Below are positions 3,511-62,472 of a stretch of DNA of 64,000 nucleotides, piece by piece. A program made the translations under genes and the position numbers. Source of the DNA: Oopsacas minuta (taxonomy: Eukaryota; Animalia; Porifera); NCBI GenBank assembly GCA_024704765.1, contig JAKMXF010000099.1:320432-384431 (forward strand). The letters run 5' to 3'. Each line of letters begins with the position of its first letter. Position 1 is the stretch's first letter. The notes below the pieces were generated by a model. It did not search any database, was not told the origin of the DNA, and worked only from the letters and a program-made list of their open reading frames with translations.

Positions 3511-3912
3511 ATGAATCAAGATTCTATCTTATTACCAAGCAACTGTTACAGTTTTTCAAGTCTCATTTTACCATCAATATTCATTTTTTTAACCCTCGGG
3601 TTTTTAAAACTATATTTTGTGAGAAAAACACTACTCCTTAATATTGTCCAACATCCTCCACCTCTTGACAATGTTCATGAATATATGCTAAACATTACAC
3701 CTCTATGTTCTTCCAGAGGTTGGAAATGTGTGGGGACGCACAATGGTTTTAGACTTTGGTCATCTACCCTACTTTATTCATCTTTGTTCCCTGGAGAAAT
3801 ACTTACTTCTCTTTCCTTTCTTACTCATACATCAGTCAATAATCTTATGAGTATTTTTGTTGATCCGAAGGAAATAATGGAATGGAATTATTTATTTGGT
3901 GTCCCTAATCAG
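3511..3912 (+). CDS. Probable first coding exon of START-domain protein: N-terminal TM anchor plus start of START-like domain 1
   Basis: Within ORF 3400-3954: ATG at 3511, hydrophobic run SFSSLILPSIFIFLTLGFLKLYFV followed by RK, then RGWKCVGTHNGFRLWS...SVNNLMSIFVDPKEIMEWNYLF (START GW motif and D-x-x-x-x-x-W region); donor CAG|GTATCT after 3912, phase 0. Start codon choice is inferred. Confidence 0.65.
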
Positions 3913-3997
3913 GTATCTTATATATTGATCCATATTTGCTTCATATGCTACTAATTATCTGTTGAGATTTTTAATGGTTAGTATGTAGATTTATCAG

Positions 3998-4250
3998 TAC
4001 TTGCCCGCTTCGCTTGCTAGGTCGCTGCGCAACATAGTGTCTCAGGTTGGATTAAGTATTAATCAGAGGAATTCCTAAGTGATTTTGGTCGCTACGCGGC
4101 GGGATAAACTCGGCACTTTTTACCTCAGGTTCATCATCTAGCAAATTTAAGATAAACTCCATGGTCCATCCAAATTACAATCATTGGCCTTCTGTGGTGA
4201 CACTGGAGATGCTTTGCCGCTTTGAATTAGTAATCTCTGTACTTCGTAAT
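3998..4250 (+). repeat. Interspersed ~250-bp repeat family (TACTnGC..CGCTTCGCT head), copy 1
   Basis: Aligns by eye along its length with 59174-59425 and with the reverse complement of 8810-9083 (shared TTAAGTATTAA, TTTTGGTC(G)CTACG, TCCAAATT, TGGCCTTC(T/C)GTGGT, TTAGTAATC). Confidence 0.7.
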
Positions 4251-4476
4251 AAGCTTTGATAAAATGGCTATTGAGGGTGAAACTTTGTCTAGACTATAAT
4301 GGAGAGTGCTTTGAGAAAAATGCGACGATTTAAGTTAATTGAATGAACATAAGTATGCAAGTCTAAAAACTTACGGTAGGGCCCTTGTATTTACATAAAT
4401 CAATATATATTCATGGATTAATTGAGTTTTAATAGTATAGATAAATATATTTATATTTTAGAACGCAATTAATCTA

Positions 4477-4545
4477 TACTAGCGCGCCTCGCTTGCTGGG
4501 TCCTTCCGTTACAGCTTACTACTCCAGGTTGGCTTAAGTATTAAA
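4477..4545 (+). repeat. Truncated copy of the same repeat family
   Basis: TACTAGCGCGCCTCGCTTGCTGGGTC...CAGGTTGGCTTAAGTATTAA matches the head of 3998-4250. Confidence 0.6.
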
Positions 4546-4599
4546 AGATTTCATCGTAGAACTAACTTCTGATGGAAAAGAGCTTACAGTTTATCCTTC

Positions 4600-5284
4600 C
4601 CGACACGAGCTGGAAACACTTATGAACCTGCAAGTTCGATTAAAATCCTTCCTATTGCACCTTTACACTCATACTTACGTATACTTGATTGGTTCCTGAA
4701 AATATTATAGCGGATAGCTGCGTGAAGACGTAACTGGGCTGCTCATGTAAATATTAGGACCAGGCATGAACTGATTACACAACGGATTTTAGAAGTTACG
4801 AATATTCAGTTTGACCAACCTGGGAGGAACTGGGAGCACTAACACCGGTAGTTCAGCTCGTTTGTTTTTTCTGATGATCTCCCTTTGAAAACAGCGGTCT
4901 CCAATATACCTCAAGAAGACGTTGAAAATCTTAAATTTTGTATAGAAATATTTCTGCTCTTCTTCGTGTAACTGAATCCTCTTAGAAGATCAATATTAGC
5001 ACCTTCAAGGCACTATATAGAGAAATATATCTCTTTTGTTAGATCATTGCTCCTGGGTTTCAATAACTCGCACAGGGCATAAATGTATAGCACATGTCTG
5101 TCAATTTGTTGAACTGAATGATAGTCGTGGCCTTCTGAAATTATATGAAGAAGGTTTCGAACAGGCACATAAGCGCATACGCAGGGTTAGTGATTATCTA
5201 TCGAGAAAATCAGATTTTCTTTCAGAAGTGAAATACATAATCTCCCGAATGTACGTAGTAGGAGAGCCAGTACTCAATGAGTAG
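4600..5284 (+). pseudogene. Transib/RAG1-like transposase, C-terminal remnant
   Basis: Manual translation: KILPIAPLHSYLRILDWFLKIL*RI (4645-4720), GTGSTNTGSSARLFF (4828-4872) and ORF 5036-5284 WVSITRTGHKCIAHVCQFVELNDSRGLLKLYEEGFEQAHKRIRR. These match Transib/RAG1 motifs LH, TNxGNxARRFF, HKxLAH and EGxE. Stops and frameshifts present. Confidence 0.75.
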
Positions 5285-5433
5285 TTTCGTTAGTCTCTCA
5301 AATTTATCAAATGTTGAGATTTGGATCATCAACGATGTTGTAAAGTATACTTAAACTGTGACAGTTCAGATATTGATTCTATTGTCAAACACTTGCTAAA
5401 AGTCATTGATTATGTTTAAACAAATGTAGTGAC

Positions 5434-8400
5434 CAGGGTTTCATACAGAGGGAGGGGGGCCCTGGAACCTTCCCCACCCAGGCACAATTATCCTCCCCCA
5501 GAAATCTTGAATTTAAGTAGGTTATTATTGTTTGTCGTGTATTAAACAATAATATTGAACGTGTGACATTACAACAAAGATGCTATGTGTGATACTTCAA
5601 TATATACTAATTATGATCACAAAAATAGGGAGATTAAAATATTGCTATCACTAATAATTATATGCTAAACTATGACTGTATTCGACGATTTTTCTCTTTA
5701 AATACTTTAAGAACTTCATCAAAGTTAACCGAGGATAGTTCTGGCCCTTCAATTGCGATCCTCATTAAATGAGCCAAATTAGCATCATTAAGTCTATTTC
5801 GAAGTCTTGTTTTAATTTGCTTCATATGGCTGAAAGATCTCTCAACTGAAGCTGTTCCTACTGGAAGAACAAGAATTATGTTGAGTAACTTGAATATCTC
5901 TGGAAATATTCAAGTGTAAGCTCCAGATGACTCCATGTGAACTTTGACATCCTGTAGGCTTGGTGTCTTGGTAGTCTCATTTTTTTCCCTGATCAACCTT
6001 GATTCTTGAATCAATGCTCGCTTGAACAAGCGCCATTCAATAGCAATTTCATCTTTGTCAATAAGTGGCGGAGAAGAGAAAGTTACACCATTATGGACAA
6101 CTATAGCTTCATTACCATAAAATTGGGCCAGAACTTCCACTTCTCTTTTACCATAATCTGGTAAAGCTGCTTCTTCTGAATGAAGAGATGCTGGATTGAA
6201 AACAGAGGATGATACAAGGAGATCTACCGCTTCACCCGAGAATCGGTTGCCGATGTTGTGTAGTAAAGCATCGACATAAGGAAGAGCAACCTTGTCACGA
6301 TAATCAGTTAAAGATCCAACACTAGCACCATCCACAAAGCTACGAGCTGAGCGACTCATTGTAATCATCATTCCATGATCGATCTCTAGCTGGTCAACCT
6401 GAGTGAGCATTCTAGAACACCAGTCGGCTTTTTCTTCCTTGAGTTCCTCTAGCGCTTTTATAATGCTTTTAAGAATCAAAGGTAGCCTACTAAAGTCCGC
6501 AGTCTGTCCCTGCATGTAGCAATTAAGCCTAGCAAGGAGATCAAGTACTTCTGATAAAAGAAAAATACTAGCTACTCCGGATATGGAGCTCAAGATAAGA
6601 GAAATTCCATATGCTTCTGCATCTCCTGACGTCTGTTAGAGCTGCTGGAGAGTGATAATAAGAGCAGGAAGATCTTTACGGATTGCACTTAGACACCGCT
6701 CATGGGACAACCACCTCGTACTGCTTGGCTTTACTACCTTCAGCTCAGGTAAATTTAGAACTGACTGAACGACCTTGAGAGCTTCTGCTTTCTTTGGCGA
6801 ATAGTAGAATAGTTTCCACAGGCTGGTCATTGTGCCAAACATTTTGTTGATTACAGTGATGGGCTCAGCAGCTTGAATAGATGCCAGCTGAAGTCGGTGG
6901 CATGCACAGTGTATATAGACTACATGTGCTGATTGTGTTCTAATTCTTCTTTGGACACCATTTGTACAACCAGAGAAAGTTGCTGCCCCATCGTAGCCTT
7001 GCCCAACTAAACGTCTATAGTCGAGATTGTTCACCTCAATGAAAGTTGTGAGAGCTTGTGTGATTGATGCAGCATCTACATCCTTGACATGGAGTATATC
7101 TACAAAGTGTTCTTCTGGATAGCCATCCACAATCCACCTGCAGCAGATTGATAGCTCTTCCTGTGTGAAAATATCCTGACACTCATCTGCTAATATAGAA
7201 AAACACGGGCTTGACCTTAGACTCTGTATTTGCGTTCTTTCAAGCCACGTGTCACGAGCATCCAGAAGCATAACTGCACTGAATTTTGAGGTGTACTGAG
7301 CATTGGAGGCACCATGAGTGAGGTGCTCTTCCAGCAATGCATCTCCATTGGCAACTTGCAAGGCAATTAAATTTAGGTAACAGTGGTGTGAGGAATTTTG
7401 TTTTTTGCTAGGAAATAGATTGACCTCATTAACTTAAGCACGATGCTGCGATTCCTCTCTGCTCTGCATGCAGCCTCTTTTGCAGCAGCAGAACACTGCA
7501 GCTCAAGTACTGATTTGCCGCACTCCACCTGCTTTGACATACCAGCAGTGACTGCTGCATCCCTATGACACCGTGACTCTCCGTATGCTCTCAATAGTTC
7601 AGTAGCATGACTCCAGTCAGTAACTCCCCTGCTTGTCCAAGCGCCCCTTGATCCTGCAGATGGATTGCCCCACTTCTGGCAGATGGTACAGAACACACCT
7701 TTTCTAGGATCTTCGCAAATTACCCAGGATAGATTTTTTCCCACTCATTTTTATATAAAGATTAGCCTTATATTGCTTTCTCTGCTCGCTAGATGACATA
7801 TGATACTTTTCGAATGAGGTGGCGTTGGATCATGCTTGGTAACTTCTGGATTTTGAGAGGAGGATGGCAAACATCTTTCACTTGTTATCTGTGAAAGCTC
7901 TTCAGATGTACATTCATCCATGTCTTGTAGGTTATTGTTCGACCGCTTTCCAGAAATGAATGGCCGGATATCCATACTATAATAGTATACTTCTAAGTAT
8001 ATTAAATATTGAAATAGGTTGGTAAAATAATATTTTGGTGGGTGGTACTATTGATTTTAGGGCTGAAACGCATATTTGATATTCGTTCGTTTGGGTGTGT
8101 TAGCATTATTAACCTGAATTTTCACAATTTAAGAAGAAAAACAAAAACTGATGAAAAAAAATAAATGAAATCCTATGTAATTATTGAATGGGACCATTGA
8201 GTTAGTTAATAACAAACAAATATTCAAATTTCACAAGCTATTAAAAGAAACTTAAAAGATTGTGGTTCTCTAAAAAGGTAGTAAATGACTTTTGAAATCT
8301 CTCGGTGTAACCCTTGAAAATATCTAGTGTACGCTGTACCCCTAGGGATACGCGGGAGACCTATTCTTTCGCAAACTACTGTTTTCCAGTCGCAATTTTT

Positions 8401-8439
8401 TTCTTCCCCCCCCAAATCAAAATCCTGTATGAAACCGTG
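5434..8439 (-). mobile_element. hAT transposon (ZMYM1/ZNF862-like transposase type)
   Basis: TIRs CAGGGTTTCATACAG (5434) and CTGTATGAAACCGTG (to 8439); flanks GTAGTGAC/GGAATGTC (5/8, degenerate TSD); about 3.0 kb. Confidence 0.8.
5670..7975 (-). pseudogene. hAT transposase, frameshifted
   Basis: Four ORF pieces with FSILADECQD, GQGYDGAATFSG, HCACHRLQL, TRWLSH, and C-terminal LPVGTASVERSFSHMKQIKTRLRNRL (hAT dimerisation domain) ending TAG at 5670-5672. Confidence 0.9.
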
Positions 8440-8809
8440 GGAATGTCGCATACTTTAGACATAAGATGCGTCACGCCATTGAAATTTACTCGATAGGTGG
8501 AAGTCTATGATAAATTTCTTAAAGTATCAATTTTTGGCCTTAAATTTTGAATTATATAATTATTTATTGCTGTAGTGAATTGAAATATTTGAGTTTCTCT
8601 GGAGAAAATTTCTTACAAATGTTTCTTTTCAACCAACATCATCAAGGCATATATAATAATAAAAAGTCATTAAAAACAGGTGTTAGGATGAATTGGCTAA
8701 TCAGTACACTCAATTATCCCAATCAAAGATCTACACTCCAAATTATGGTTAAAGGAAATTTGAATTTGAATTATTAATGAGAATATGCTGTTTTTGAGAA
8801 TTTCATAAT

Positions 8810-9083
8810 ACCTGAGGCACAAAGTGCCTATATTACTATCTAAATCCACTTAGCAGCTCCAATACATTGAAGTCCATTAAATGGAATTTAGAGGTATCAT
8901 GAATTTCAAAAAGATATTTTGCCTCAAAAAATTCCCCTCGAGGTGCATAGCGCCGAATATACTGGCCGCGTAGCGACCAAAAGCATCAAAAAGTTTTGAT
9001 ATTTAGTACTCATGCTAACCAGAGGCACTAAGCTAAAGTATACTTCTGCCCGCCTCGTAGTGACCTAGCGAAGCTCGCAAGTA
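8810..9083 (-). repeat. Interspersed repeat family, copy on minus strand
   Basis: Reverse complement begins TACTTGCGAGCTTCGCTAGGTC and contains TTTTGGTCGCTACGCGGC, as in 3998-4250. Confidence 0.65.
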
Positions 9084-9213
9084 TTAGGATAAAATTGTCC
9101 AAAATTTGTAAATTCTAGTTTATTGCCAGAATCCGTATTTGAATACTTTTATTATTTGCCAAAATAATTGAATTTAGTTGACATAAGAATGTTACATTCA
9201 ATGCTAAGTGATA

Positions 9214-9360
9214 TACTGCTTTCGCGCTTCGCTGGTAGCTAGCTGCTCAAAAGCTTTGTGCTTTGCTTAGTTTAAGTACGATACAACTAAATTTCTTATA
9301 GTTTTCGGTAGCTTCGCCATGGGATGTACTTGACACTGGATTCACATAATAGCGGAATTA
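9214..9360 (+). repeat. Diverged partial copy of the same repeat family
   Basis: TACTGCTTTCGCGCTTCGCTGGTAGC...TTTAAGTA...TTTTCGGTAGCTTCGCC; a further head at 11612-11690. Confidence 0.45.
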
Positions 9361-9823
9361 GATTAATTTCTTATCTATGGTTCACCGAAAAGTTGGCTCA
9401 GTCTTGAGTGAGTGACAGTAGTGACCTGGCACATTTTTTGAAATATCCAATAATAAGTTAATACGTCTATTAATGAATATTGTCAAATCAGTATACACTA
9501 TTTATACTATATATCCGCTTTCCCATACCTTTGTAGTACTTTTGTTATAGTATCTCTGAAACAATGATCATCGACGATCATATAGCCAATCCCCAATTAA
9601 ACAAGAGTGATTCTAGGATATGTATATTGATGTTGCCATAATGGAAAATGCCACTTTTTAGATGACTTGTGCTGTTATATATCATGCCAAGCGAGTGTAG
9701 AGAGCGGGCGAAATTATTTCCTAGATAAATACCTCATTATTATTAAAATGGCCAAATTCGGCTAGTTGAAATTGAAATGGTTCAGCAACATATGCCCAAA
9801 CTTGTAAATCGATTTATGTTAAG

Positions 9824-9988
9824 TTGGGGCTGCCAAGAAAAATGACTCCAGCAGATTCGATTTTAACGACTCGTTTACCTGAAAGTGGGTCACTTCCCCA
9901 CACCCCCCGCGAGGTGCTCCCCTATGGATTATTACTACTGGTTTATGACATTGTGTAGCAACGTCAGCAGCTTTGAGTCTGCGTGTGA
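9824..9988 (+). CDS. Candidate exon, frame and strand unresolved (possibly middle of START domain 1)
   Basis: GC-richer island; acceptor TTAAG|9824 gives LGLPRKMTPADSILTTRLPESGSLPHTPRE, loosely alignable to the START WP-x-x-x-RD region; donors GTGAGT (9985) and GTAAGC (9989) lie in other frames; minus strand is also open (9819-10097). Confidence 0.25.
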
Positions 9989-11103
9989 GTAAGCCTTCCA
10001 GTGGCAAGTTGCGAAGTCTTTTAAAGTCTGATATAATCGAATGCTCTTTGCTCATATTCATATTTCTTACTCTATTAATTTCAAAAACCTTTACCAAGCT
10101 GGCAATTCAGCATAGTATCCGTGTGATTTATGTGGAAAGTATATGACTATGTTTACAAACTAAGAAAACGAACTATATTCGCATTCCATTGAACTATTTT
10201 CATGATTTTCTGCTTGCAATTTACCTTACCAGTACTTTCTAATAATTCATCGGTATGATCTTCTCATAATACAATAACAGGGGAATGTATAAGTCGAAAC
10301 TCGGATTTAGTAAAATTTCACCACATTATTATATTAATCTTTATTCTAACTTATGAGTTCCTATATTCATATATCATCAAACCATAAGCGGTAAATATTG
10401 TATATTTTATGAAATCACGCTTAACTGTATGAAAGCAAAATGGTACATAAATTTTGGCTTTTCGAATCGATTTACTATAGAAACATAATTTCTAATATAG
10501 TGGTGCTACCTACATGCCTATTTCCCCAAAATGCCTGTTATTGCCTACTGTGACATGTTATGTCCGTGTTTACTTCTTGTTTTGAGTTTTTTGAGCCTGT
10601 TTTCAGATGGACTTTATCTGTTTCGGGACAATTATTGCTCTGGCGATATTTTATGATTTTAAACAGCTCCCAACAATCATAATCACTAAATAGATCGATG
10701 CGCCGATCCCTTGTGTTGTTTTGCCTTTTAATAGATCTTTTATCCACCTTTAGGTGAGCTTAGCACTTTTTAGAACCCAACGCCACAAACCTTCCCCATC
10801 TTGATATGCTTCCTCATATTCTCATGGATTGTTCAGGATGATATAGTTTGGTAGAACTTTCTCTCATCATGTTCTACTACATTTATATCTCTGTTGATTG
10901 AAGCCTTAGCGTTCCACTTACTTTTCCCCTATCTATCAGATCGTTCATCTCCAATCTATAGCAATACTTACAGTCTTCATTTATACATCATTATTATTAA
11001 GCATATTTATACTTTTAACATTTATCTCGCAATGAATCTATATATATGTGTGTTTGTATACACATGTTAATATGTTCCGAATTATTTTAAGAGTACTTTA
11101 ACA

Positions 11104-11163
11104 CACCAGAGCTCATTTTTGGTATACATGTGTATTATGAGCCTGGCTCGAACACCTTTGAGG
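11104..11163 (-). repeat. Short dispersed repeat with Pol III B-box-like core
   Basis: Minus strand GTTCGAGCCAGGCTCATAATACACATGTATACCAAAAATGAGCTCTGGTGT aligns with the minus strand of 63885-63932 (GTTCGAGTCAGGCTCCAAATACACGTATACCAAATTCAGCCCTGGTGT). Confidence 0.5.
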
Positions 11164-12239
11164 CTTGGAAGATAATTCACACCTATGACTAAATTTTCAC
11201 GTCATTATTACCATTTTCGAATTTCAAAAATCAGATTATATGCTACTGCTCAGCCAATTTATATGATAGATTGTTGAAATTTATGATACCCTACAAAATT
11301 TCCTAACTTCATCATTTGGACAATTGTTTGAAGCTCATCAAAAATGGCTCAATTTCAATCCTAACTTAAGCCCTTTAAATTATTGTCTTGAGTACATCTG
11401 GCCTGTTGCTCTTGGCCCCCACGCTTATCTCTTGTTTTTATGTTTCATTTTTTGTTTTTGTTTTTTCCTTAGAAATTCAATGACGTTTGGTAGACATAAT
11501 TTTCCTATGGTTATATATTCCAAGCGAAAATTGCTGAAACTAAGATGGGTATAGATTATACCATAGCTCTTAATATCACTTTATTAGTATTATGATTGTC
11601 ATCATACCTATTACTCGTGCACTTCGCTTGGCTAGGGCAATGCAATCGCGTACCTGTAGTGCCCATTTTAGTTTCAGTATATAACTGTGGCTTTTCTTCC
11701 CTATGTAATGATATTTCCTTGGTGCCTAGGATTTATAAATAGTTATAGATTTGTCATTTTTTTATCCTTTCACCTCATTAGTTATAATTTGGCATGAGGA
11801 TTATTATTTTCTGCACCTTCGGACAATTTCGAGGTTTTGAACAAGGTTCGCACCTATCACGAAATTATCCGAGAGATTTTTCGAAACATTACTATATTAT
11901 TCACTGATCTGATAAGTCAATAAATTTGATATAATTTTTAATAATTCAGCATAGATACATATTTTCTGACTCACTCACAATCAGTTCATTTATTTATTAT
12001 CACATTTCTTCTTATTTAGACAAACAACACTTGTGTTAATACAAATCAATCTCTTCTTGAAGGATGCTCTACCTTTGATAACAAATTTTCATTCTTTTGT
12101 GGTGGAGTTTACTTTGGAGAAGCTTTTTTCCCATTGACAATCAAATGGAAAAAATTTGAGAATAGTGCTCTGATAGTTTATTCACCTATCCAAACATATT
12201 TATTGTGCTTTTATCGTATTTTTTTCTTCCTCAATACAG

Positions 12240-12541
12240 TTTCAGAAACAAGAGGAATCTCAGATGTCACAGTAATTTTATGCAGATTCAAAAATGGCAG
12301 TTTTCTGTATAATTCATTATCTATTTTACAAATTGCTTCTAGCCTAAAAGATTATATTTATATGAAACAACATGGAGCCTATTTGTCCAAAATAAATGTA
12401 AAGAATACATGTAGTGATGAACATGCTCACTCTTTACAGGATCCTATCTCAACAAAATCAAGCAATATTAATAATCCCAGAAAATATTCCCACGAAACCG
12501 TTCACGTTTATGTGGACCTTATTGAAAAGAACGTTCTGCAG
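12240..12541 (+). CDS. Exon of START-domain protein (end of START 1, linker, first helix of START 2)
   Basis: Acceptor TTTTTTCTTCCTCAATACAG|, 100 open codons (SETRGISDVTVILC...QIASSLKDYIY...HETVHVYVDLIEKNVLQ), donor CAG|GTTAGA phase 0, matching the phase-0 exon at 23523. Alternative acceptor at 12439/12440. Confidence 0.65.
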
Positions 12542-13932
12542 GTTAGACTGCTTGAGATTTTCCTTTCGAATTATTTCTTTCCGTATATTTATTTTGTTTT
12601 GATGAGTCTTTCGTTCGTTTACCTTGTACTGTTAGATAACTGTCGCTTTGAGTTCCAATTATACTTGGGATCTATTCGAAGCAAATACAGTAGAACTCGA
12701 TTATGACTAAAGGCTGAAACGAATGTTCGATTTAATTTCGTTTTTGATTAGGGTTTATCGAATTTTCCTAATATTCCATTAAAAAATATTCTTTAAAATA
12801 TTCGTTTGATACTTTTTTAATGAACAACGTTTGTATTAACGCTTTTCATTTCTAATTGTGATCATAAATCATAATAGATCATAATAGATCATAACACCTG
12901 ATTATAATTATCATATTTCTATCATAATAATTTAAACTAACGCGCTTCATGTGTACACACTGAATCTATTTCGTGTGTATGCGTACACAAGAACCTTTTC
13001 GGGTCTACACCTACACATGATACAAAATCGGAGCAGTTGGTAAGTATGATAACTACCTCATCATGGAACATTTACAGTTACAATACTATCCCTGTCGATC
13101 AAACACATTTAATGACCCATATGCAGATTTTTCTAGTACACTGAATCAGTGGCTTCGTGTTATATGTGCCTGTGGGGTCCGTGCCTCCACAAATATTTTC
13201 CGACTTCCCACATCATTACTCCAAGGGACCAGAAAGATCTCCTTAGTGGGCTAATTGCAAATCAAATGTTATTTCTTGTGAAGAGTTTCGCTCCTTGACC
13301 TTACTGACTGTTTACAGTGCCCTCATCCAGAACGTGTTGCACACTAGATTGAATTTGAGTCCCCCCAGATTTTAATGCCACTGAGTGATTGTATCATTTG
13401 TACATGTACACCCGAAAAGGTTAGTGTGTACACTTAGACACTATATTCTTGAATATCTTGCGACATATATTCTTTTCTTTAGTTTGTAGGTATAAGTAAA
13501 CTTATACCAGTTGACAACTTCGCAATTACGAGTAGACTGTTTTAGTTATTTATCAGGTATATTTCCCTCTACTAAGCTATATGTCTCACAAAGATAAATC
13601 TGATTTGTAAACTTCACTCTCCAAAAGAATGCTGTTCATTCAATCTTGAAACAATGTGTACCATTGGCTAAGATATGATGATGAATGAGATGCACTATTC
13701 TGTTATGTATGTGAACTTGATTCTAAGAATCCTACATCTAACAGCACCTATATCGCGGAAGACTATGAGCTTAGAGAATCACCTCTATAGGCAATGTTCA
13801 CCTAAAAGCCGAGGCAGCTGTGCTTGCCACTGAAAGCCCTCATAAAAATATTTAAGCGGTTGAAAAGGGAATCATTGGATAACATGCGATACATATTCAA
13901 CACTGCATATTTTGTTGTCCTGGAAAATTTAG

Positions 13933-14085
13933 CTTTACGAAATTCGGAATGTTTTGGCCTCTCCAGCCTCTAAATGGAGTTGGAATCGGGGCTCTATACA
14001 CAAAGGATGAGCGTACCCTTGAATTTGCTGCATACATTGTCGAAGCTATGAGACTAATTCAGTCTGAACAACTAAAACAAGTCAG
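13933..14085 (+). CDS. Exon of an unidentified intron-nested gene or pseudogene
   Basis: TTTAG|C...AG|GTATTT, phase 2-2, 153 bp: FTKFGMFWPLQPLNGVGIGALYTKDERTLEFAAYIVEAMRLIQSEQLKQV. Confidence 0.5.
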
Positions 14086-14153
14086 GTATTTAGTGTTACG
14101 GCAGATTCTTCTACTGATAGATGTCTCAGTGAAAATGAAATGATTTGTATCAG

Positions 14154-14331
14154 ATACTTCAGTCAAGGAAATTACTTACCCAAGTCATTTTACGCAGGAC
14201 TTGGAACTCTTGGAAAGGCTGACGCCAAAGGAATTCTAGAAAGAATTGATCAAATTTTGCCGAAGCGAGTTTGGACAGATTTCACAGTGGCACACACCCT
14301 GGAAATTGATCAAAATTTCACCCGATATTTG
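14154..14331 (+). CDS. Next exon of the same unidentified nested gene or pseudogene
   Basis: 68-bp GT-AG intron (14086-14153) joins in frame to YFSQGNYLPKSFYAGLGTLGKADAKGILERIDQILPKRVWTDFTVAHTLEIDQNFTRYL; donor GTAACA at 14332. Confidence 0.5.
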
Positions 14332-15392
14332 GTAACAATTTAATGTTCATTGTGAAGTGAATTATCCCATTACTTGAAATATCCAAAAATTGTAATAATT
14401 CATCATCTAATTCAGCTACAATTGGAATGCATATACGCAGTGAATATTTCTTGCTCAGAAATTATTCTTGAAAACCGCAAATATTCATTTATATCAATGA
14501 ACTTAGATTCTGGTATCTAGGCAACTAACACATTTCAAGGGGTTAATCAATGTTCCATGTATTAGATGGAGCCATAGTTTGGAGATAAAGTGCATAACAT
14601 GACCATAGCTCAGGGGGACATTTTACCTCCCCCCTTCAAATCACCTAGAAAAATTCCTGCATTCCAAGACTTCATTCGATTGCATTCTCGACCACTTTCT
14701 TATTGCAGTGATTACATAAGCGGAGTTCTAAATAATGAATCCTTAAAATATCTCAAACATTTTGATAAAATTTATACTTGAAAGTACTATACGTTATATT
14801 GACGAATGCTTTCATGGAAATGAAGTATCATATGCTTTAGTGTTATCTTTCCAGCTGACTGGCCAAGTTAATTTTCCCTATTAGCCCGTATTGGTAAGCC
14901 TGAAATGTAATCTTTAACAAACCATTTTATTAGGGTATTGCCAAATGATTGATTTGTGGCAAGATTTTTTGCGAGTGGACGGAATTCAAGGTTGCAGTTG
15001 CATATCAACAGAAGAAGCAGGATACTATTGATCATATTGGAATGCAGAATCGAGTTCGAATGTTCTAGGAGTTCCATAAACTATATTTGCTTTGCTAGAA
15101 TTCGCTGGTGATGCCTTGGAGTACAGCTTCAAGTTAACGAGGATTCTCTGCTTTGAATCTTATCAAGACCTCTCTTAGAAGTTGTTTATAGCACGTTTTA
15201 AATGATGATTTATTGCACATTTCAGTAAATGGCTCACTTCTGAATACATTCTCTGCGGATGAAGCTCTAGAACTGTGATGTACAGGCATGTATACGGACA
15301 TAAAACTCCGAAGACGCTTCAAAGTGATCAAATTGTATGTGTTGCTATTGCCGATCACTCTATAGATACATCACAGTCTAATGAGTCTATGC

Positions 15393-19687: not shown

Positions 19688-19757
19688 CAGTGTCCCTAAC
19701 CTTTTTGGCTATGAACACCCTATCACAGGCTGTAGACCCCAGGTTTGGGAATACTAT
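19688..19757. mobile_element. Tiny degenerate hAT-type MITE relic
   Basis: CAGTGTCCCTAACCTTT at left and AGGTTTGGGAATACTA at right form an imperfect inverted pair of Charlie-like ends. Confidence 0.35.
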
Positions 19758-24560: not shown

Positions 24561-24723
24561 ACAAAGTATGTGAATAACTATCCCATAAGAGTTAAATATT
24601 TAATATATTCGTATATCACTGTGGATAAATGTGTATTAGGTAGACAGGAATTATTTTACAAAAAGTCTATTATTAGCTACAGTCCTATGACGTCATAACT
24701 TGACATGGCAAATACCTCTAGAA

Positions 24724-47520: not shown

Positions 47521-48913
47521 AGATTCGATTTTGCATTATTTTCTTAGTGACTCTCTGCCTTTTGTTAGGATGAATATGTATCAGCTGTCTTGAAATAAAA
47601 TCAATTATTCCAGGATAGTATCAGAGATTATTTACATTTACTTGAGTACTAACTCCAATATCAATGTGTTTTCTTTAACTTTATTATCGAATTTAGACTC
47701 TGATATTTCTTTCATAGTGCCAACCAAAGGCTGACTTTCCTGTGACTTATAGCATTAAATTAACAGTTGCTTCATTCTCAAATTCTTCAATTATTTCATT
47801 ACAACTTTCTACCTCACCATTAACACACATTTCAGATTCTGCAAATGCACTATTACAATCAATGGATCGTTTCGCAACATAAAATATGACATAAAAATTT
47901 GAAAAGTAGGTCAACTTCATTCAATTTTTACAATTTACGATTCGAACAATAACATGCAGAACTATTCTCTTGATCTTATTATCCATTTTGAACTTTAGAC
48001 TATTTTGTACTTATCATGTCTATTACGTGAGCTATACACGTATGTCATACTGTATTTCCATGTAATTTCACCATTACATACAAACGTCCAACAGTTTTGG
48101 AGGTAATTCAGAATATGAAATATTTTATGGGTAAAGCAAGAACTATATGATTATAACTCTGCTATAATCCATTTCTATTGTATTTATTTTAAGTCTATTA
48201 ATGTCCATTAATAACCAATTTTGAACTTGAATACCATTTATTCAAGAATTATGAAATTTCAGCTGTACTTACCATAACACTGTCATTTCTCATTCAGGTA
48301 TTGTACTGCTTGAATGCTCAAAATGATGGATAGTAAGAGCATAAGGCAATATTATATTTGAGCAGGAAGGTAGTTTACTAATCGAGAGCCGGTAGCATCC
48401 AAATTTATAACTACAGCCTGGCCCTGAAACAATTTGATAAGATCTATTTGGTTGGAAGTATACGTACATATGTAAAACAAATTGATCTTGCACAAAGTAC
48501 TGAACATATCCTGAAATAGTTGATTCAGGAGGTAATGACGAAATTGCAGCTGAATAGTTACTACATCTTGCATGAAAGAATGAGAAAACCTACTAACATT
48601 TGTCATTTTTGATTAAACTTTGGTTTAAGAATCTGCCAATTTACATACTTAAAATTACCTAAAAATCCTCCTGTTTGTCAGAATAGTTGAATTGGTTTCT
48701 AAATTTTTTGCTCACTGAATATGTATCTGACAATCCCCCCCTTATTTCTGCGCTCTCTACAAGATAAATTTCGACTGTAAGCACTCGTATCATCTCTTTA
48801 GTGAGTTGAAAGAGATCCTTCTGGATACAATTTGAAGATAGGATTGTTTTTCTTAAGCTGTCTGATTTTATACCTATAATACTTGAAATTCAAAACACAT
48901 ATATTGTTTACAC

Positions 48914-53700: not shown

Positions 53701-56700
53701 AAATAAACTCTCGCGCTCCCTTCAAAATTATTGGGTACATAGCTAATCTTGCCCCCGGATCGGTCCCCTTGCTGAGAAAACAGCTGGCGATGAAGTTGTT
53801 ATTTTGACTATTAGGAAACACTCAAATTAGCCACCCCACTCTTCGTTCCAGATCCAGCTTCCCGGAACGCAGAACCTGGATTATATTTGAATGAAGTTGT
53901 TAGTTGTGATTATATTATTTTATGATCCTTCCTTTTCATATATTGTATTTCCTTAAGTAATTTTTAATTCCTACACGTTGCTTTATCAAAAATTTTAACT
54001 CAATCTTCTACCTGAAGTTCCTTATATGTTTCCTCTATTTACTTTCAGCATCCCTTAAGTGTTCCTTATTAACTAATTTTCGTGTTCTCCAAAATATTCG
54101 TTTATGCATCAGTACTTTTCACCCAATACCATTTTTTATATTACCTGGAATTTCTTATCGAATACCAGAATATTATCCAATATCCATATTTGCCAACCTC
54201 TGTCAAATCAATCTTTGGAAGGAGCTCAAAATTTCCCTGGAATTTGGGTATATTACCTGGACACCAGATTATATTCTCGCTCGCTACGCTTGCTCTTTAA
54301 TGAATTAAATTCCTGCCATCATATACTTTTCTCCCTGGACACTCCCTGGACACATTTTTGTGTGTTAATCTTAATTAGGAAATTTATTGTCCAGGGAATT
54401 TCTGAGAGCATTAAAGTTGTCATTTACGATCTAGAAAATAGGATTGATTGAGTAATGATAATCTTCATTATTCGTTCTAAAATAAATTTTGCTTAACGCA
54501 TTATGATAGATCATAGTTGAAATGCATAATTCAATTGTAAATTCTTATATGTCACTAAGACTTACATAAGCTAGCTCTAACATGCATATTTCTTGCGATA
54601 TGTGCTAAAAACATATTTACTGTCGATTTGTCGTTTCACGCCTTCTCGGTGAAATACATTGCCTTAAGTTATATATGCCATGACTCCATATTACTTTACA
54701 GATCATCTGGCCTGGTGGCATTCTGGGTAGGAATTACTTGTGTTGGAAATGTTAGAATTTATAGATTGAAATTGGTGGGAAGAAGGTTTGACAAAAGATC
54801 ATACAATATGTGAGAACACGGCGAGATGTGAAGACCAATAACCGATTAGAAAGCTGTAAAGGAACAGCTGAAGCATATATTCAATTTCATATCGAGTTCT
54901 CATTTGTGCTTTATTTATATACATTGAGGAAGTCTCTGCCATATCAAATAATTATCGAATTATCGAAAAAAGAAAGTTCCTGAATTATAGCACATACCAT
55001 GGATAGCACATGTTTGCTTTTACCCATTTATAACCGATAATCATGGAAATTTTTTGAAATTCAGGATAGCCACTAATTATACACCCCCAAATTCCCAAAC
55101 TCTTATAGTTCATTTTGATATGATATCTCACAAGATTATTGCTCAATCTCAAAAATGACTATTCGTGGGTGTGTTCACGATTACGTCACATTGCTGAGAG
55201 TTATCATTTTAAAATGTATTGTCAGAGTATGTGTACTTTGTGTAGTCGGATCCATACTATATCATGGCTATCCTGATATATAATAATTTCTGTGATTTCG
55301 AGTTATAGTGGTTTTTTGCAAAAATGTGCTATCTATGGTGTGTGCTATAAGTCAGAAACTTGCATTTTTGTAGTATTCGCTGAATTATTGAATACAAACT
55401 ATATAATTGGCATGTTTGTCAATATTTTGATTTTACGGAATGATGACATGTATTCTAAAAGTATGTTATACATTCATTCTGCCAAAAGTGATTGTTTCTG
55501 AGATATGCACTCCTTCATAATAGCACCAACTCGGTGAGCAAATACTTTGTACTGAAACAATAGCCAGTGCGATTGCCTTACTGTATTCGAAGCTATATTT
55601 TTGCCATTATTCCGAAGATTTTAATTTAAATCCATCAAAAGCTGATTGTTGTCTATAAATGGGCTATCTGGGACCTTTTTGTGAAAATGGATTGAAATTT
55701 GCCAAAAGTTTTCATACCATGACATTTACGTCAAAAAGTATTTTTTGTGTCTTATTCGCAATATGTGTGAATTTTGCAAAAATTTTGGTCAACAATGATT
55801 TTCGAACAAATTAACTGCAAGAAAGAATATTTTATGTTTTCTTCGGGTAGTGACTGCCATCAAATTTATCCCTTCGCTATGACAACGCTACAAAATTCGG
55901 TTAACAAATGCCCAAAATGACAACTTCATAACACAGCAATATTCAAAATTACTCTACTCATGGCATACTAAAGATAAGGATTGGTCACTACTTTGGACCA
56001 GGGATAAGAGGATATAGATATATTTGGAAAGGAATTCTAGAATCACAGATAATACAAACTTACTGCACTTTCATCCGAGTACATGTATTATTGATATGTT
56101 TAATTCACAAAAGCTCCCTATGTTCAATTTTTCACATCAAAGTAACGATATTTGTTAGCGAAATTGGCCAGTATCTACGATATACTGCTCCATCTTTGAA
56201 ACAATGTAAAACATGAATTATCAATCTATGTTCAAATGTTCAAATACCAAAATGATCTAAAACCGTCTCTGTACAAAATAGATGATTTTTGAATCACAAA
56301 ATTAGCACCTTTTTTGAGTTATCGCATATTCCATGGATATTACATGTTACAAATATCCCCTTAAAACTGGATAGCCATTTTATAGTATACCCCAACTTCC
56401 CATACTCTTATAGCACATATTCGTATGATATCTCTTACCAATATGACGAAATCATAAATATGCCCATATATGGTCATTTTAGAGATTCTGCAATAACCTT
56501 TAGAGAAATCATGTCAAAATGTATCACAAGGTTATGGGAAGTTGGGTGTATACTATAAAATGGTTATCCTTATTTGGCTATTATTTCTACGATTATCGAG
56601 GTGTATGTGGATATTGGCCAAGCATGTGACATCCATGTTCTGTCCGATAACTCAGTAATTTGCGAACCTTATCATGAAAAATTCATATATTTTTACAGAC

Positions 56701-57828
56701 GTTTTCAGATCATTTGAATTTCAACATTTGGAGCATAGATTCATAATTCAAGTTCTACACCGTTTCAAAGATGGTTTGAGAATATATTTTTCTATTACAG
56801 TAACAAATGATGTCAATTGGAATTATCATTTTCACAAATGTTGTTTTTGTGTATTCTTACATATCAAATATATTTAATCATGTGTAAATGTATCAGTTTC
56901 TTATTATCGTTGATTATAGAATTTCCCATAAAATATATCTACTTCCTTTATATCCCTGTTCCAGTGAAAATTAACTCAGTCATCATGCTTTATCTTTAGT
57001 AGACTATGGTTTGCTAAACCGATTACGGCCATATTTTATGTTCTTAATCTAAATGGAACACTGAATTTTACCAAATCGTTGTAACCGATTCCCGCACCGA
57101 AATAACGATTTTGCACCTTTTTACTACATAAAAACACACATCCTGTAATTATTCTATTGACTCTCTTGTTGAATGAATGTTTGGAGAATTTAGGCAATGC
57201 AACAGATAACTGATGATCTTTTAGATTGAGAAATTCCTTTACCCAATTTCTTGCTTATCACTTAAGTTTTCAAAGAAAAGGTTAAATTCGTATAGGGAAC
57301 CCATGGACTACCTTTTCCATACCCTTCCAATATCCTCCGATAACAAATATCAACAGAGCAAATTCCATGATTGTTGTCATTCGTTTTTATTGCTATTCGA
57401 ATCAATGCTATCAAATACACTATCACGTATTGACAAAGATATTGTGTGAGTTGACCTATTTTTTCCAAATTTATATTTTTCAATCTGAAATCTTAGGTGT
57501 TCGAATATTATTTTAAATTTTCTGGGTGTATGACTAGTAACATAGTATTATATATTCAATAAGGGGAGAGGAATATATGGCCAGTGTATCTAAATTGCAC
57601 ACTAGAGCCTCACTGTCCCTTCAGGATAGTGTCTAGCAAGTAGACTGTCCACATATTTACTGTAAATATACGCATATATAGTTAATTCTGGGTTTTATCC
57701 TCGACTTGTGTATAACACACGCCCCGTTTTAGTCTACGTACTGGCTGCTATTTTGGACACTTTATAATCCAAGTGATAATTTCTTAACTTGTTAATTGTA
57801 TATTGTATTCATAATGTAATTATTTTAG

Positions 57829-58110
57829 ATGCCCTGTCAAACCTAATTCAATTCGTGGAGATGTCCGAGCTGGATATCTTATCTCGGGTGATAATTCAGA
57901 TTCAAACATTTGTACTGTTACTTTCGTTTTAACCATTGATCTTAAAGGGTCGATTCCTACTTGGGCAATTAATCGCTTAATGACCTCCCAGCCCATGATT
58001 CTTGAGAGAGCGAAGAGAATTTTAGAAACTTCAGTTTCAAATGGTATTATTGTGAATCCACTCAAGCTTGTAGATGAAGCTGAATTACCACCTATTTCAG
58101 AAATTTCAGA
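57829..58110 (+). CDS. Exon of START-domain protein (START 2, C-terminal part)
   Basis: TATTTTAG|A, phase 2: CPVKPNSIRGDVRAGYLISGDNSDSNICTVTFVLTIDLKGSIPTWAINRLMTSQPMILERAK...; ends at donor GA|GTAAGT (or at TAA 58112-58114 if unspliced). Confidence 0.92.
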
Positions 58111-58394
58111 GTAAGTGACCAATGTATATTTGCGCACAAATATTCAGGTGAACACAACTCCAAATCCATGAGTGGGCCAAGGTTGGGAAAAGGAAATTAT
58201 AGGTAGGGCCATTTTTTCGTGGGTCAGGCCATTGGTCCTGCTAGTAATAGTTCAGCTGACGAAGTGGGGATCTGAGGAGCACTGCTCCTCTAGAAAGAAT
58301 TGTCTTTTGTGTTCTAAGGTTACATTTGTAGACTTGGGAAATATATATACATTATTTAACTTTTAGTTATTTAACATTACTTATAGGCTTAGCC

Positions 58395-58490
58395 CTAATT
58401 TTAGTGTTGTCTAACCAGCAACATAGGTTGCAATAGACAAATGTTCTGCCACCTAGGTTGCTTGGACTTTTTATAGCAACCTAGGAGCGA
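58395..58490. repeat. Short cluster of GCAAC(A/C)TAGG motifs in both orientations
   Basis: GCAACATAGGTTGC, CCTAGGTTGC and GCAACCTAGG within 100 bp; transposon-end-like relic. Confidence 0.4.
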
Positions 58491-59173
58491 CATTCTACTA
58501 AAATTATTTCATCATTTTTTATCTCAAATAATCGAAGTTATTTTAAATTTTGTATGTCAATCAACATGTATGTTTATAGAAAAAATACACATTCACTATC
58601 ATCTTACCCTCCTATAGTGTCTGAATTTCGAAAGTTTATCTCGTATTGCTTTTCGATAACCTTCTCCTAATTATTTGTATGGTTAGACTGTAAATTTTCT
58701 ATTCCTGTGTAATGTGTATGTAGATACAGCTTACGAAAACGGTGCACCCATGTATTTTACCATTGCACTCAGGGTCCCAGCCGATCGTTTATTATTTGCT
58801 CCGCGGAACTAAATTATACTTGTTCATAATATGAGACTTCATATTATGCGAACTTGATTTAATGCAGATGCTATGGAATGATTTTATATGGACCACCGAC
58901 TGGGTTCATAATAAGTGACACTGAAGTAGATGATCCCATTGCAGTTTGAACATAAATTCTCACTCATTTTCCTTCTTAATCACTTTTGTTGGTCTATTAT
59001 TTCCACTGAATTACAGCCCTGAAAACATGAATGTAATTAATGGTTAGCCAAATTTTGAGCAATAGATTGGGTTGACCAAATTAATCGGTTTAACCATTTT
59101 CGGTGTATTAGATATTCGGTTATGACAGTTTCAACCTTGAAAATTACTAATATTCTAATTCAAATATATAATA

Positions 59174-59425
59174 TACTAGCACGCTTCGCTTGCAAAGTCG
59201 CTGTGCCAACGCTTAGGGCCTCAAGTTAGGTTAAGTATTAAAGAGCTACATTTCTTGATGTTTTGGTCCTACGAGAGGGGAATACTCAGCACTACGTCCC
59301 TCGGAGTTAATTTGTGGAAATTTCAAATTTACTATTCATAGCTCATCCAAATTCCATTAAATGGCCTTCCGTGGTAATGCTAGAACTCTAACGTGGCTAT
59401 AAGTTAGTAATCTTGGCGCCTCATG
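59174..59425 (+). repeat. Interspersed repeat family, full-length copy
   Basis: TACTAGCACGCTTCGCTTGC...TTAAGTATTAA...TTTTGGTCCTACG...TGGCCTTCCGTGGT...TTAGTAATC, colinear with 3998-4250. Confidence 0.7.
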
Positions 59426-60671
59426 TCTCGAATTTTATGAAATTCTCAAAATATCGAAATTGGTAAAATTTGGAATTTTTTATAGTCATGATGATGTATT
59501 TTGTTCAGAATCATGATGTCAGGACATCGAAATTGAATTTCAAACTATCATGCATATTGGCTATGCAGTTGCCAAAGATGTGATTATTCAAAAGTCCAAA
59601 TAGGTTACTATGGCGTCATAATTTGTCAGGTTTGAATGTTCGTCCAAGACTCGAACTTGTCTGACCCCGGACTATTATACCCCTGGTAGGCCAAAAATCA
59701 CACCTTGGGGTCCTCCAGTTTCAATCAATTCTGAACCAAATGTATATCTACATACCAAACTGAAGTGACTTAATATACGAGTGAACTAAATTTATATTTG
59801 CTAACATTAGTAGATTTATGCCTGAAAAATCATTATTCATTTATTTAATGACAACAGCTGTGCTAAACCCAATTGCTCCGAGTTACCAGTTACATATCCG
59901 CATGCTATACTATTTTAACTACATTAGAACTATGTTTTATAATGACTTGTTTGGATGAGATGATATATCTCAAAGATGTATATTTAATATATTCCTTGGG
60001 ATGCAGTGCAGTTCGTTTTACTACATATTAAACATACTCATATACTTTTCAGATTATTCACACGGACACGATATCAAATTGCAAACTTGGTAAAAGATTT
60101 TGAATAAAACAATTGTATACTAATTCTAACACAATTGGCTCAACAAAATCATATAGACGATTCGATTTAACAGGCATTATATCATAGCAAGCAAATAGTA
60201 TGCATGTATTTGGGTGCCTTCAGTGCATCTAGAAAGCATCTAATAATAATAATGGCAATATCTTTTGCTGTCTATACATTTATGTATAATAACTGGTCAT
60301 GGTAGGTGACGATATTTTTCAGGACCTTGAAAGAAATGTGCAAACATGTCTGAAATGGCATTGAAGAAATCAGTCAAATAGAAATTACTTCACTAAATTG
60401 TAGATTGAACAAATAGTCGTATTATACTTAATTCCTCTTCATTGAAATACCTATTTACAATTCAAAATTTCAAGTGTCTACTGAAATCATCTGAGTTGGA
60501 TGTGATTATGAGACTATTAGAAAATATTGATTCAAATTTGGGAAATATCCGAATACATCGTGTATAACGTATTATAGATTTAATATGTATTATTCGTTAT
60601 CCGTGTATTATACAACTTAGATTTAACATGTCGAACTTGGTTAAATACCATCTTGTATATCTTAACTATAT

Positions 60672-60838
60672 ACTCTGCAACCTCGATAATCCGAACTCTT
60701 CAGTTATCCGAGCATGCCTTTTGTCCCAGTTCCCATTTTACTAGGTCTAAACGAATTCGATTATCCGAATTTTTATTATCCAGTCGCTTTTGACCATTCC
60801 CAACGAACTAAGATAATCTAGGACTCTAGGTTGTGCTG
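60672..60838. mobile_element. Degenerate TA-flanked MITE
   Basis: CAACCTCGATAATCCGAAC at left with an imperfect inverted match at right; internal TTATCCGA repeats. Confidence 0.4.
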
Positions 60839-60969
60839 TATTGGGCAATTGTTTTTAATAATTCTCACCAAAACAGAGGATGATGTTAAGTAACTGTGAG
60901 AAATATGTGAAAGAATTTTGGGCTACGGGGGGCCTATTCCATAAAAACTTGTTTAATGAGCATATAGAG

Positions 60970-61472
60970 CAGTGGTTCCTAAAAGGGGTTCCTCGAACAA
61001 TGCTTAGGGGTTTCACATCACATATTATTGTCAAATAGAACCTATTTGTATTTTTGATCAGATGTATGTCTCGATTCAATTTGAATCACCACTGAAAATG
61101 AATACCCTAACAAATTCAAAACGCTCTAAAGTCATGCTACTATTTCGGCAACATATATTTGTGAACTATGATTCTCTTCTATGACAACGATAGAAGTGTA
61201 AAATGAGAACGACTTTTGTCTGTTGAGGGAGAGATGCGAGTGTGTTCATCGACAATCAGTCCGAGGATAAATGTGATGCAAATATCACCAGGCACAAGTT
61301 TCACATAGGAAATGTATTAGAATGTATAAAGTAATTACAGGAATAAATAATTTGTTATAATGGTGTCTTTGTGGAAAATGTATGAGTAAAAGAAGATGGA
61401 GGGGGTAATGTTCCGCAGGTTGCCGCAACATGTTTATGGGTTTGGAGATTGAAAAATGTTTGAAAATCACTG
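60970..61472. mobile_element. Non-autonomous hAT element
   Basis: Ends CAGTGGTTCCTAAA / TTTGAAAATCACTG; TSD ATATAGAG/ATTTAGAG (7/8); 503 bp. Confidence 0.75.
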
Positions 61473-62368
61473 ATTTAGAGGGCCGATACGTGTATACATA
61501 GACTCAACTCCCTAGAAAACTATTACCAAATACAGATTTTATTTTGCAGTATTTCTGCAAGCTTAGCTTCAGGCTTCTAAATATTGCTAAATAGGATTCC
61601 TAACCCCCGGCTAATTGCGGCACTAAAGAAGTTTTGGGGTTGTATCATCTCTAAGGCTTTAAGTTTTCTTTAACGAATCTAGGAGCAAGAGAATTTATTT
61701 TCGAAATGAAAAATTCAACTTTCGAATAACTTTATTCCCTGATTCCATAAAAGTACTTAGATTCATTCGAAAAATATCCCTTGTGTTTGAAGCATGTATG
61801 GATGTATTTTGTGCATGTCTTGTCTGGCTTATATTGTACCTTATTCTACTTTGTTTAAAGAATCAATCGAAACCAATTTTCGCTCATATTTTTACATTGT
61901 GATATTCTCATAATATCAAGGCCTCTTGTATTCAAACCATTAATCTCCTCAATTTATGGAGCTCACTCCGGCTCCACCTCTAGGCAAAATGGAGCGCTCT
62001 CCAATTGTGCACCTTCATTCATTCATTCAGATTTACATTAGATTTCTCTTTTAATTAATTAGGATTGAATTTAACCATTGTACATCCGGAAATTTCTAAA
62101 TGTGCGAAAGTGAAACCATTTGAATACCGTTTGAATCATACAAAAGTCTCCCAGCATCCACTTATTATACCAATAATACTGAATTTTATGCAGAATAATG
62201 ATGAAATTTGTAAATTGTTTGAAATTCAATAGGCACACGCTGTGTGCTCCTTCAATAATGAGGTGCGGATTTTTGAGTGCGTTCCTTTATGCTCTGCTTT
62301 TTACAATTCTATATTTTCATATCAATAGTCATAACTTGTGTAAGTTGTTCATTATTACATTAATACAG

Positions 62369-62472
62369 ATTTGATGAACCTAATTCTGAATCCAAGCGAA
62401 TAGATACTGCTTCTCCCATCTTGACTTCTGATATACAAAGTGATCATGAGGATATTATTCGCATATCCGAAG
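62369..62472 (+). CDS. Probable downstream exon of START-domain protein (acidic linker)
   Basis: AATACAG|A ... G|GTATAC, phase 2-1, open: FDEPNSESKRIDTASPILTSDIQSDHEDIIRISE; phase matches the donor at 58111. Confidence 0.6.

Follow-up and report, generated by a model that had tools for sequence, protein, structure and literature searches.

In this work, we analyzed a 64,000-nucleotide stretch of the glass sponge Oopsacas minuta genome (NCBI GenBank assembly GCA_024704765.1, contig JAKMXF010000099.1, positions 320,432 to 384,431 of the forward strand), hereafter the window, together with the DNA that follows it. The window and this flank most probably hold one O. minuta gene, which encodes a membrane-anchored protein with three START domains and is homologous throughout to unstudied proteins of cnidarians and a demosponge. 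Six of the seven coding exons lie within the window and the seventh starts 1.6 kb beyond its end; the predicted exons total 2367 bases (788 codons plus the stop codon) and are spread over about 63 kb. A first-pass annotation had proposed a hidden gene for a membrane-anchored protein with tandem START domains, which might continue past the window. A hidden multi-exon gene for an anchored multi-START protein is what we find, and its last exon is located at window-equivalent positions 65587-66269, the numbering being continued past the window end; the START units number three and not two. The gene is a new addition to a named, unstudied family.

The main evidence that the exons belong to one gene is provided by a protein family with the same layout. 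A family profile was built from six full-length members (the Acropora, Nematostella, Hydra and Ephydatia proteins described below and two metagenome proteins) and run against a six-frame translation of 72 kb, comprising the window and a further 8 kb. Exactly five significant matches were obtained, all on the plus strand and in the order of the protein: exon 1 at profile positions 28-128 (E 5e-10), exon 3 at 377-425 (E 5.5e-6), exon 4 at 430-501 (E 3e-12), exon 5 at 502-569 (E 4.8e-15), and exon 7 at 800-982 (E 3e-63). Homology was assessed exon by exon, using separate exon peptides; added singly to the family alignment, these peptides take up successive places with no gap between them and preserve 41 of the 64 invariant columns that they cover. 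Because the five profile matches are colinear and the tiling is gap-free, the exons are assigned to one gene. One Acropora protein and one Nematostella protein each span exon 1, exon 5 and the third START domain (START 3); the latter protein also matches exons 3 and 4.

The search with exon 5 described below brought up a full-length family of multi-START proteins in cnidarians and in the sponge Ephydatia. Its members include Acropora cervicornis KAK2568953.1 (702 aa), the products of Nematostella vectensis LOC116604069 (XP_032221821.2 and XP_048585764.1, 837 and 856 aa), Hydra vulgaris LOC100208202 (XP_065662101.1, 1141 aa) and Ephydatia muelleri KAL5483737.1 (885 aa); like a 599-aa protein of Pigoraptor, each of them has two Pfam START stretches. 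A hydrophobic N-terminal anchor is present in the proteins of Acropora, Hydra and Ephydatia, in the longer Nematostella isoform and in the two metagenome proteins, and is absent from the Pigoraptor protein and the shorter Nematostella isoform; of the six full-length homologues used for the profile, five have it. Where the sequence after the anchor was read, in the proteins of Acropora and Nematostella and in one metagenome protein, it contains the motif P-x-C-x-x-(K/R)-G-W. The cnidarian and Ephydatia proteins share with the O. minuta protein a divergent first START domain, the same domain order and colinearity to exons 1, 3, 4, 5 and 7. The sponge protein differs from them in that identity is 25-40%, some invariant residues are changed and the linkers are shorter, and its gene differs from those of other family members in being spread over about 63 kb via transposons. 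The O. minuta protein is probably an orthologue of these cnidarian and demosponge anchored multi-START proteins. No studied function was found for the Nematostella, Acropora, Hydra or Ephydatia proteins. The database name "StAR-related lipid transfer protein 9" carried by relatives is automatic; the kinesin motor of STARD9 gave no Pfam match in any exon or in the homologues. The architecture, described as unusual in the first-pass annotation, is so by comparison with mammals only, since public protein sets of Nematostella, Hydra, Acropora and Ephydatia already contain colinear full-length homologues and many protists have multi-START proteins.

The predicted coding exons, all on the plus strand, divide the protein as follows. 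Exon 1 (3511-3912) starts with the ATG at 3511 and encodes the anchor and the first third of START 1 (helix 1, strands 1-3 and helices 2-3); exon 2 (12020-12541) encodes the rest of START 1, a linker and the first helix of START 2. Exon 3 (23523-23683) provides the end of helix 1 and strands 1-3 of START 2 with the GW motif, exon 4 (35473-35685) its middle part with the W-P-x-x-x-R-D-F motif, and exon 5 (57829-58110) its last strands, the D-L-K-G-x-I-P loop, the C-terminal helix and the start of the following linker. The probable exon 6 (62369-62472) encodes an acidic, serine-rich linker between START 2 and START 3. Exon 7 (65587-66269, equivalent to L010:3587-4269 and G000:C99:386018-386700) encodes START 3 and ends with the TGA stop codon. 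All six stretches named in the first-pass annotation are flanked by AG and GT, except that exon 1 begins with an ATG, and all are open in the frames given there; the quoted motifs EGW, WPLRSRDF, IRG and DLKGSIPTW are found in the sequence. The predicted phase is 0 at the 12541/23523 junction and 2 at each of the next three junctions, and exon 6 ends in phase 1, so that all six predicted junctions are phase-compatible. The codons split at the phase-2 junctions are AGA, GGA and GAA, with no stop among them. The observation that GT-AG exons with phases 0, 2, 2 and 2 can be joined in frame into a START domain is confirmed by the open frames, by the split codons and by a Pfam match described below.

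For exon 1, the earlier description as a hydrophobic anchor followed by a GW-type START N-terminus agrees with both hydropathy and the family profile match. The hydrophobic stretch has a Kyte-Doolittle 19-residue mean of 2.06; an alternative in-frame ATG is found at 3400, and a second hydrophobic stretch appears if translation starts there. The anchor is followed by the GW-type START N-terminus, which bears the P-x-C-x-x-(K/R)-G-W motif common to the family. At the equivalent place, exon 1 is 37% identical over 35 aa to a START paralogue of the sponge. Scored against a START profile, it outscores 497-498 of 500 shuffles, and its nearest neighbours by protein language model are START clusters (score 0.90). 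In tblastn searches, exon 1 matched residues 15-112 of the Acropora protein (E 9e-6) and residues 27-116 of the Nematostella protein (E 1e-4). The surrounding open frame (3394-3951, 186 codons) is single-copy in the genome, and in 200 block shuffles of the window the mean count of frames of at least 186 codons was 0.025. The exon ends in phase 0 with the donor CAG/GTATCT. A MENTAL domain (PF10457) was sought in exon 1 and in the open reading frame (ORF) 3400-3954, and no Pfam match was returned even at E up to 10.

The second exon had been placed at 12240-12541, and a middle exon of START 1 had been postulated between 3913 and 12239. Both claims are revised here, since exon 2 most likely starts at 12020. 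The frame in question is open from 12020 to 12703 (228 codons) and is single-copy; 200 block shuffles of the window produced no frame of 229 codons or more, the longest being 215. Its acceptor, ttatttag/ACA, with the AG at 12018-12019, has a pyrimidine tract; the exon is in phase 0 at both ends and has the donor CAG/GTTAGA. As exon 1 ends in phase 0 and the acceptor at 12020 is in the same phase, the two exons can be joined directly and no exon is missing, whereas exon 1 spliced straight to 12240 would run into a stop after 11 codons. The idea of a missing START 1 exon was dropped once the acceptor at 12020 was seen. A search for such an exon within 3913-12239 by paralogue tblastn, by reading the sequence by eye and with two family profiles had returned nothing. 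The family domain-1 profile aligns weakly but colinearly across 12146-12409, straddling the acceptor at 12239/12240 (18 of 1000 shuffles reached its score, p ~0.02). On the family alignment, exon 2 sits between exons 1 and 3 and retains the invariant W150.

A model in which exon 2 starts at 12240 in phase 1, preceded by one or more undiscovered START 1 exons in 3913-12239, is quite improbable. The AG at 12238-12239 does follow a strong pyrimidine tract, and an in-frame intron of 75 bases (12165-12239) is arithmetically possible. However, 3913-12019 contains no open stretch resembling START or the family and consists of transposon sequence to a large extent, while the frame from 12020 has its own acceptor in the phase that exon 1 needs. 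The family profile, moreover, runs across 12146-12409, and the exon fragments leave no gap in the alignment that a further exon could fill. The direct junction of exon 1 with exon 2 at 12020 is therefore retained. Beyond its donor, exon 2 is followed by a further 54 open codons in frame (12542-12703), which encode a hydrophobic, T-rich segment, and retention of intron 2 would give an anchored protein of 362 aa ending at 12704-12706.

The second START domain is encoded by exons 3-5. When the exons were scanned singly, exon 5 alone passed the Pfam START threshold (27.6 bits, cut-off 22, profile positions 137-188). Exon 3, which is in phase 0 at its start and phase 2 at its end, is 33-36% identical to the intronless paralogues L007 (246 aa) and L008 (276 aa), and exon 4, in phase 2 at both ends, is 35-42% identical to START domains of multi-START proteins. 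L007 and L008 match exons 3-5 in the expected order, and on a profile made from the two these exons occupy positions 25-75, 77-126 and 150-219. The Pfam match of exon 5 and the ordered paralogue matches to exons 3-5 therefore establish START 2 as real. The two paralogues (G000:C365:993452-1002046) are single-START genes, about 89% identical, located 5 kb apart in opposite orientation, and a third partial copy of the antisense ORF lies in L007, at 2393-2698 of that locus; the arrangement looks like a recent local duplication. One intronless START gene of the assembly has a product 100% identical to an O. minuta protein at NCBI.

Exon 5 was also searched against 1.84 billion representative proteins, which yielded exon-sized ORFs from ENA/Logan assemblies, 51-65% identical and with the core motif kept, and numerous long proteins that each matched START more than once. 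No relative came up in two scans of metagenome contigs. None of the representative proteins was 100% identical to exon 5, and that collection therefore has no protein containing it. The donor of exon 5 is A/GTAAGT, and the unspliced frame stops at a TAA at 58112-58114. Directly after the end of exon 5 that is shared with the exon-sized relatives P0004, P0005, P0006 and P0026 (58109-58114), each sequence has a codon whose last base is or could be G and then a codon starting with T, after which the sequences diverge. Judged from these residues, the splice donor appears to be conserved at the same phase in all five sequences.

Exon 6 is a probable coding exon and the least certain one. It has AG and GT ends and an open frame, and its phases (2 at the start, 1 at the end) fit both neighbours. 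Its codon usage scores above the 95th percentile of random open stretches, over 34 codons only. Direct splicing of exon 5 to the last exon was considered and rejected, as the acceptors in the right phase have poor pyrimidine tracts. The acceptor chosen for exon 7 is tatttag/GT at 65586/65587; no other acceptor nearby has as good a pyrimidine tract, and the one base that it needs from the preceding exon is supplied by exon 6 (G + GT = Gly).

The third START domain is contained in a 251-codon ORF on the plus strand (L010:3514-4269, window-equivalent 65514-66269), located 3.1 kb past exon 6 and ending with TGA. Compared with the C-terminal-most START domain of longer proteins, this ORF shows 36-40% identity across about 180 aa (E down to 3e-44), including 40% identity over 182 aa to the Pfam-positive last START of the Ephydatia protein. 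Among solved structures, its best relative by sequence is STARD6 (E 5.7e-5).

The same features allow the locus to be read as two or three separate START genes, which arose by fission or were never fused; the units would be exons 1-2 up to the stop at 12704-12706, exons 3-5 up to the TAA at 58112-58114, and START 3 from the ATG at 65514. We consider this unlikely. Although the reading frame of exon 2 continues beyond the donor as far as 12703, a TAA follows unspliced exon 5 and an ATG opens the third ORF after a stop, the phases fit at all six junctions and the GT after exon 5 appears, from the encoded residues, to be conserved in the exon-sized ORFs. The intronless paralogues are single-START proteins ending where exon 5 ends, and START genes are found in close pairs elsewhere in the genome; nevertheless, exons 1, 3-5 and 7 match single Acropora and Nematostella proteins in the same order. 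In addition, exon 3 has a good acceptor and would lack most of helix 1 unless exon 2 is joined to it.

The nature of the first domain was addressed through the family; START 1 itself gave no Pfam match in the exon-level scans. At the family level, the first ~64 columns only of domain 1 resemble START by sequence (hhalign E 2e-4 to 3e-3). A model of the Acropora protein, predicted from an alignment of 11 sequences, has a low mean predicted local distance difference test score (pLDDT) of 48, with values of ~55-70 across most of domain 1. Beyond the anchor helix, this model contains the complete START succession of a helix, three strands, two helices, six strands and a long helix, and residues 34-234 align over their whole length to solved START domains: StarD4 (Z 15.9, 175 of 199 residues aligned, root-mean-square deviation 3.1 Å), STARD3 (Z 15.5, 178 of 214, 2.9 Å), StAR (Z 14.8, 179 of 210, 3.4 Å) and CERT (Z ~14, 184-193 residues, 3.9-4.6 Å). 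This full-length match of the coral domain 1 therefore suggests that the family layout is an anchor followed by three START folds, and by homology to the coral protein the sponge protein would also contain three. AlphaFold applied to exon 2 by itself was uninformative (pLDDT 37). For the part encoded by 12020-12400, a START nature is weakly suggested by sequence and comes mainly from the predicted fold of the coral homologue.

Several observations weigh against a single gene for an anchored triple-START protein. The 12020-12400 region gives no Pfam, hhalign or ESM Atlas signal, its G+C content of 0.31-0.32 is intron-like, and its codon usage is no better than that of random open stretches; the codon-usage test is too weak to tell exons 1-2 from such stretches. 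Database searches with exons 1 and 2 returned no match, these searches being limited by a length filter and by the word index. Exon 6 is without a homologue match in the family profile and multi-START searches. The Pfam START profile, to which the first-pass annotation had pointed, recognizes START 2 through exon 5, whereas START 1 has no match and the START 3 ORF scores 14.7 bits, below the cut-off. Several family-invariant residues are changed in START 3 (R-D-F to R-Q-T and R-G to R-L), and its ORF, opening with its own ATG right after a stop, could be expressed alone. Every exon junction is a prediction from sequence, and the model behind the domain 1 fold is of low confidence (mean pLDDT 48) and represents the coral protein, not the sponge protein. 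The membrane, the topology and the cargo discussed below are likewise predictions.

The introns of the gene are exceptionally long. Introns 1 to 6 measure 8.1, 11.0, 11.8, 22.1, 4.3 and 3.1 kb, which is 10-65 times the genome mean, the O. minuta genome having a mean intron length of 341 bp and 1.59 introns per gene (PMC10280926). Interspersed repeats make up 34% of this genome, with DNA transposons accounting for 15.4% of the genome (PMC10280926). Multi-copy DNA transposons are present in each of the four largest introns, and none is located inside an exon. Because each large intron took up DNA transposons, several of them young, the gene came to span about 63 kb; such transposon-stretched introns may be the reason why gene prediction missed it.

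A decaying pseudogene, in which a former triple-START gene was torn by transposons and is unexpressed, is very improbable. The length of the introns and their load of young transposons would fit decay, as would the absence from the searched collection of a protein containing exon 5, the intron-like composition of exons 1-2 and the loss of some invariant residues in START 3. Decay is at odds with the state of the exons: all seven are open, with intact AG and GT ends, matching phases and no transposon inside, two of the open frames are far longer than expected by chance in A+T-rich DNA, and exon 5 keeps the core motif and 51-65% identity to related ORFs.

The transposons, listed here for introns on the plus strand, are of several types. 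Intron 1 (3913-12019) contains a 3.0-kb element at 5434-8439, with at least 5 copies listed that are 96-98% identical, and a DUF4371 hAT-type ORF is found at 6636-7361 on the minus strand; an older 0.9-kb repeat (4544-5433) and a repeat at 10071-10562 are also present. Intron 2 (12542-23522) carries, at 15396-17761, a 2.4-kb hAT-type element that has at least 13 copies (93-98% identical); a hAT dimerisation domain is encoded in ORF 16523-17572. Older repeats of this intron are found at 19967-21251 and 21478-23024. Intron 3 (23684-35472) harbours a 1.3-kb mariner-type element at 25609-26922 (at least 6 copies, 91-95% identical), in which ORF 25675-26250 matches Transposase_1/DDE_3. The same intron also has a repeat at 30131-31383 and, at 26920-29460, a 2.5-kb element of which at least 27 copies are near full length (92-95% identical). 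Two minus-strand ORFs at 27707-29326 lie inside the 2.5-kb element and are therefore, given the many copies of this element, transposon cargo or core and not an intronless host gene for a USP-like cysteine protease.

In intron 4 (35686-57828), positions 38590-40888 are occupied by a 2.3-kb element, for which the 39 matches listed include at least 34 near-full-length copies (93-96% identical). A further element, with many copies that are 83-91% identical, spans 48931-50754, and older repeats lie at 46863-47577 and at 56363-57011. The 38590-40888 element, which has minus-strand ORFs at 39133-40592 without a Pfam match, looks to be among the most recently active in the genome. Intron 5 (58111-62368) is bounded by the exon 5 donor and the exon 6 acceptor, and intron 6 extends from 62473 to window-equivalent 65586, its first part (62473-64000) being in the window. 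Copies of a mariner/Tc1-type transposase flank the gene on both sides, the upstream one broken into pieces (1481-2380, minus strand) and the downstream one being an intact 301-aa ORF (L010:9088-9993, minus strand).

A START domain holds one lipid in a closed pocket. In the proposed mechanism, the anchor would fix the protein in one membrane with the START domains exposed to the cytosol, and the three lipid pockets, connected by flexible linkers, would most likely carry lipid at membrane contact sites. An anchored carrier can reach another membrane only where the two lie close, and a lipid-transfer role at contact sites would therefore be the most likely one. The same argument, that an anchored lipid-transfer protein serves a second membrane only where membranes are close, was made for the LAM family (PMC4463742). 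A sterol cargo would be a weak guess from the resemblance to STARD6 and StarD4.

Comparison with known systems places the predicted protein among several types of lipid carriers. STARD3/MLN64 consists of a MENTAL domain and one START domain and transfers sterol at contacts between endosomes and the endoplasmic reticulum. The sponge protein resembles it in combining an N-terminal anchor with START, and STARD3 START structures are among the matches to domain 1 of its homologue; it differs in having no detected MENTAL domain, one or two hydrophobic segments instead of four, and three START domains instead of one. STARD4, STARD5 and STARD6 are single-domain cytosolic sterol carriers. STARD6 is the closest solved structure to START 3 and StarD4 is the top structural match to the homologue's domain 1, although these proteins, unlike the sponge protein, are soluble, have one domain and possess neither an anchor nor a tandem arrangement.

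The domains of LAM proteins are classed as VASt (PF16016), and these proteins have a C-terminal anchor and carry GRAM/PH domains. The LAM/Ysp2/GRAMD1 proteins, which act at contacts of the endoplasmic reticulum with the plasma membrane, are like the sponge protein in that a lipid-transfer protein is held by a membrane anchor, with the same contact-site logic. In contrast to them, the sponge protein matches Pfam START (PF01852) and has its anchor at the N-terminus; Pfam scans of the exons and homologues returned START only, with no VASt or GRAM match. In yeast Ysp2, two StART-like domains are arranged in tandem and both bind sterol, and LAM domains form a distantly related StART-like family described apart from canonical START (PMC4463742). 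Tandem START proteins are widespread outside bilaterians. The protist multi-START proteins, which are the next-best matches of exon 5 after its exon-sized relatives, have several START domains per chain and sometimes a membrane domain; their layouts include MENTAL with three START domains in Diphylleia rotans, four START domains in Perkinsus chesapeaki, four START domains with Pex24p (a peroxisomal membrane domain), and FYVE with two START domains (proteins P0009, P0007, P0012 and P0008). They differ from the sponge protein in their accessory domains and anchors, and the likeness noted here is one of domain content.

The inferred gene adds to O. minuta a conserved gene that is apparently absent from the public Oopsacas protein set. 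It indicates that some genes of this "compact" genome are located in transposon-rich regions, with introns tens of times longer than the mean, where gene finders fail. It also draws attention to a family, conserved in early-branching animals, that combines one membrane anchor with three START domains and has no studied member and no mammalian counterpart of the same layout. More tentatively, and with considerable doubt, N-terminally anchored triple-START proteins might represent an ancient class of lipid carriers at contact sites, as yet undescribed, which sponges and cnidarians have retained, to which two-START proteins of the unicellular holozoan Pigoraptor are related, and which was not seen among the named bilaterian hits. 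If so, the three cargo pockets, held on a single tether, would serve to pass lipids from one membrane to another or to sort them between the two.

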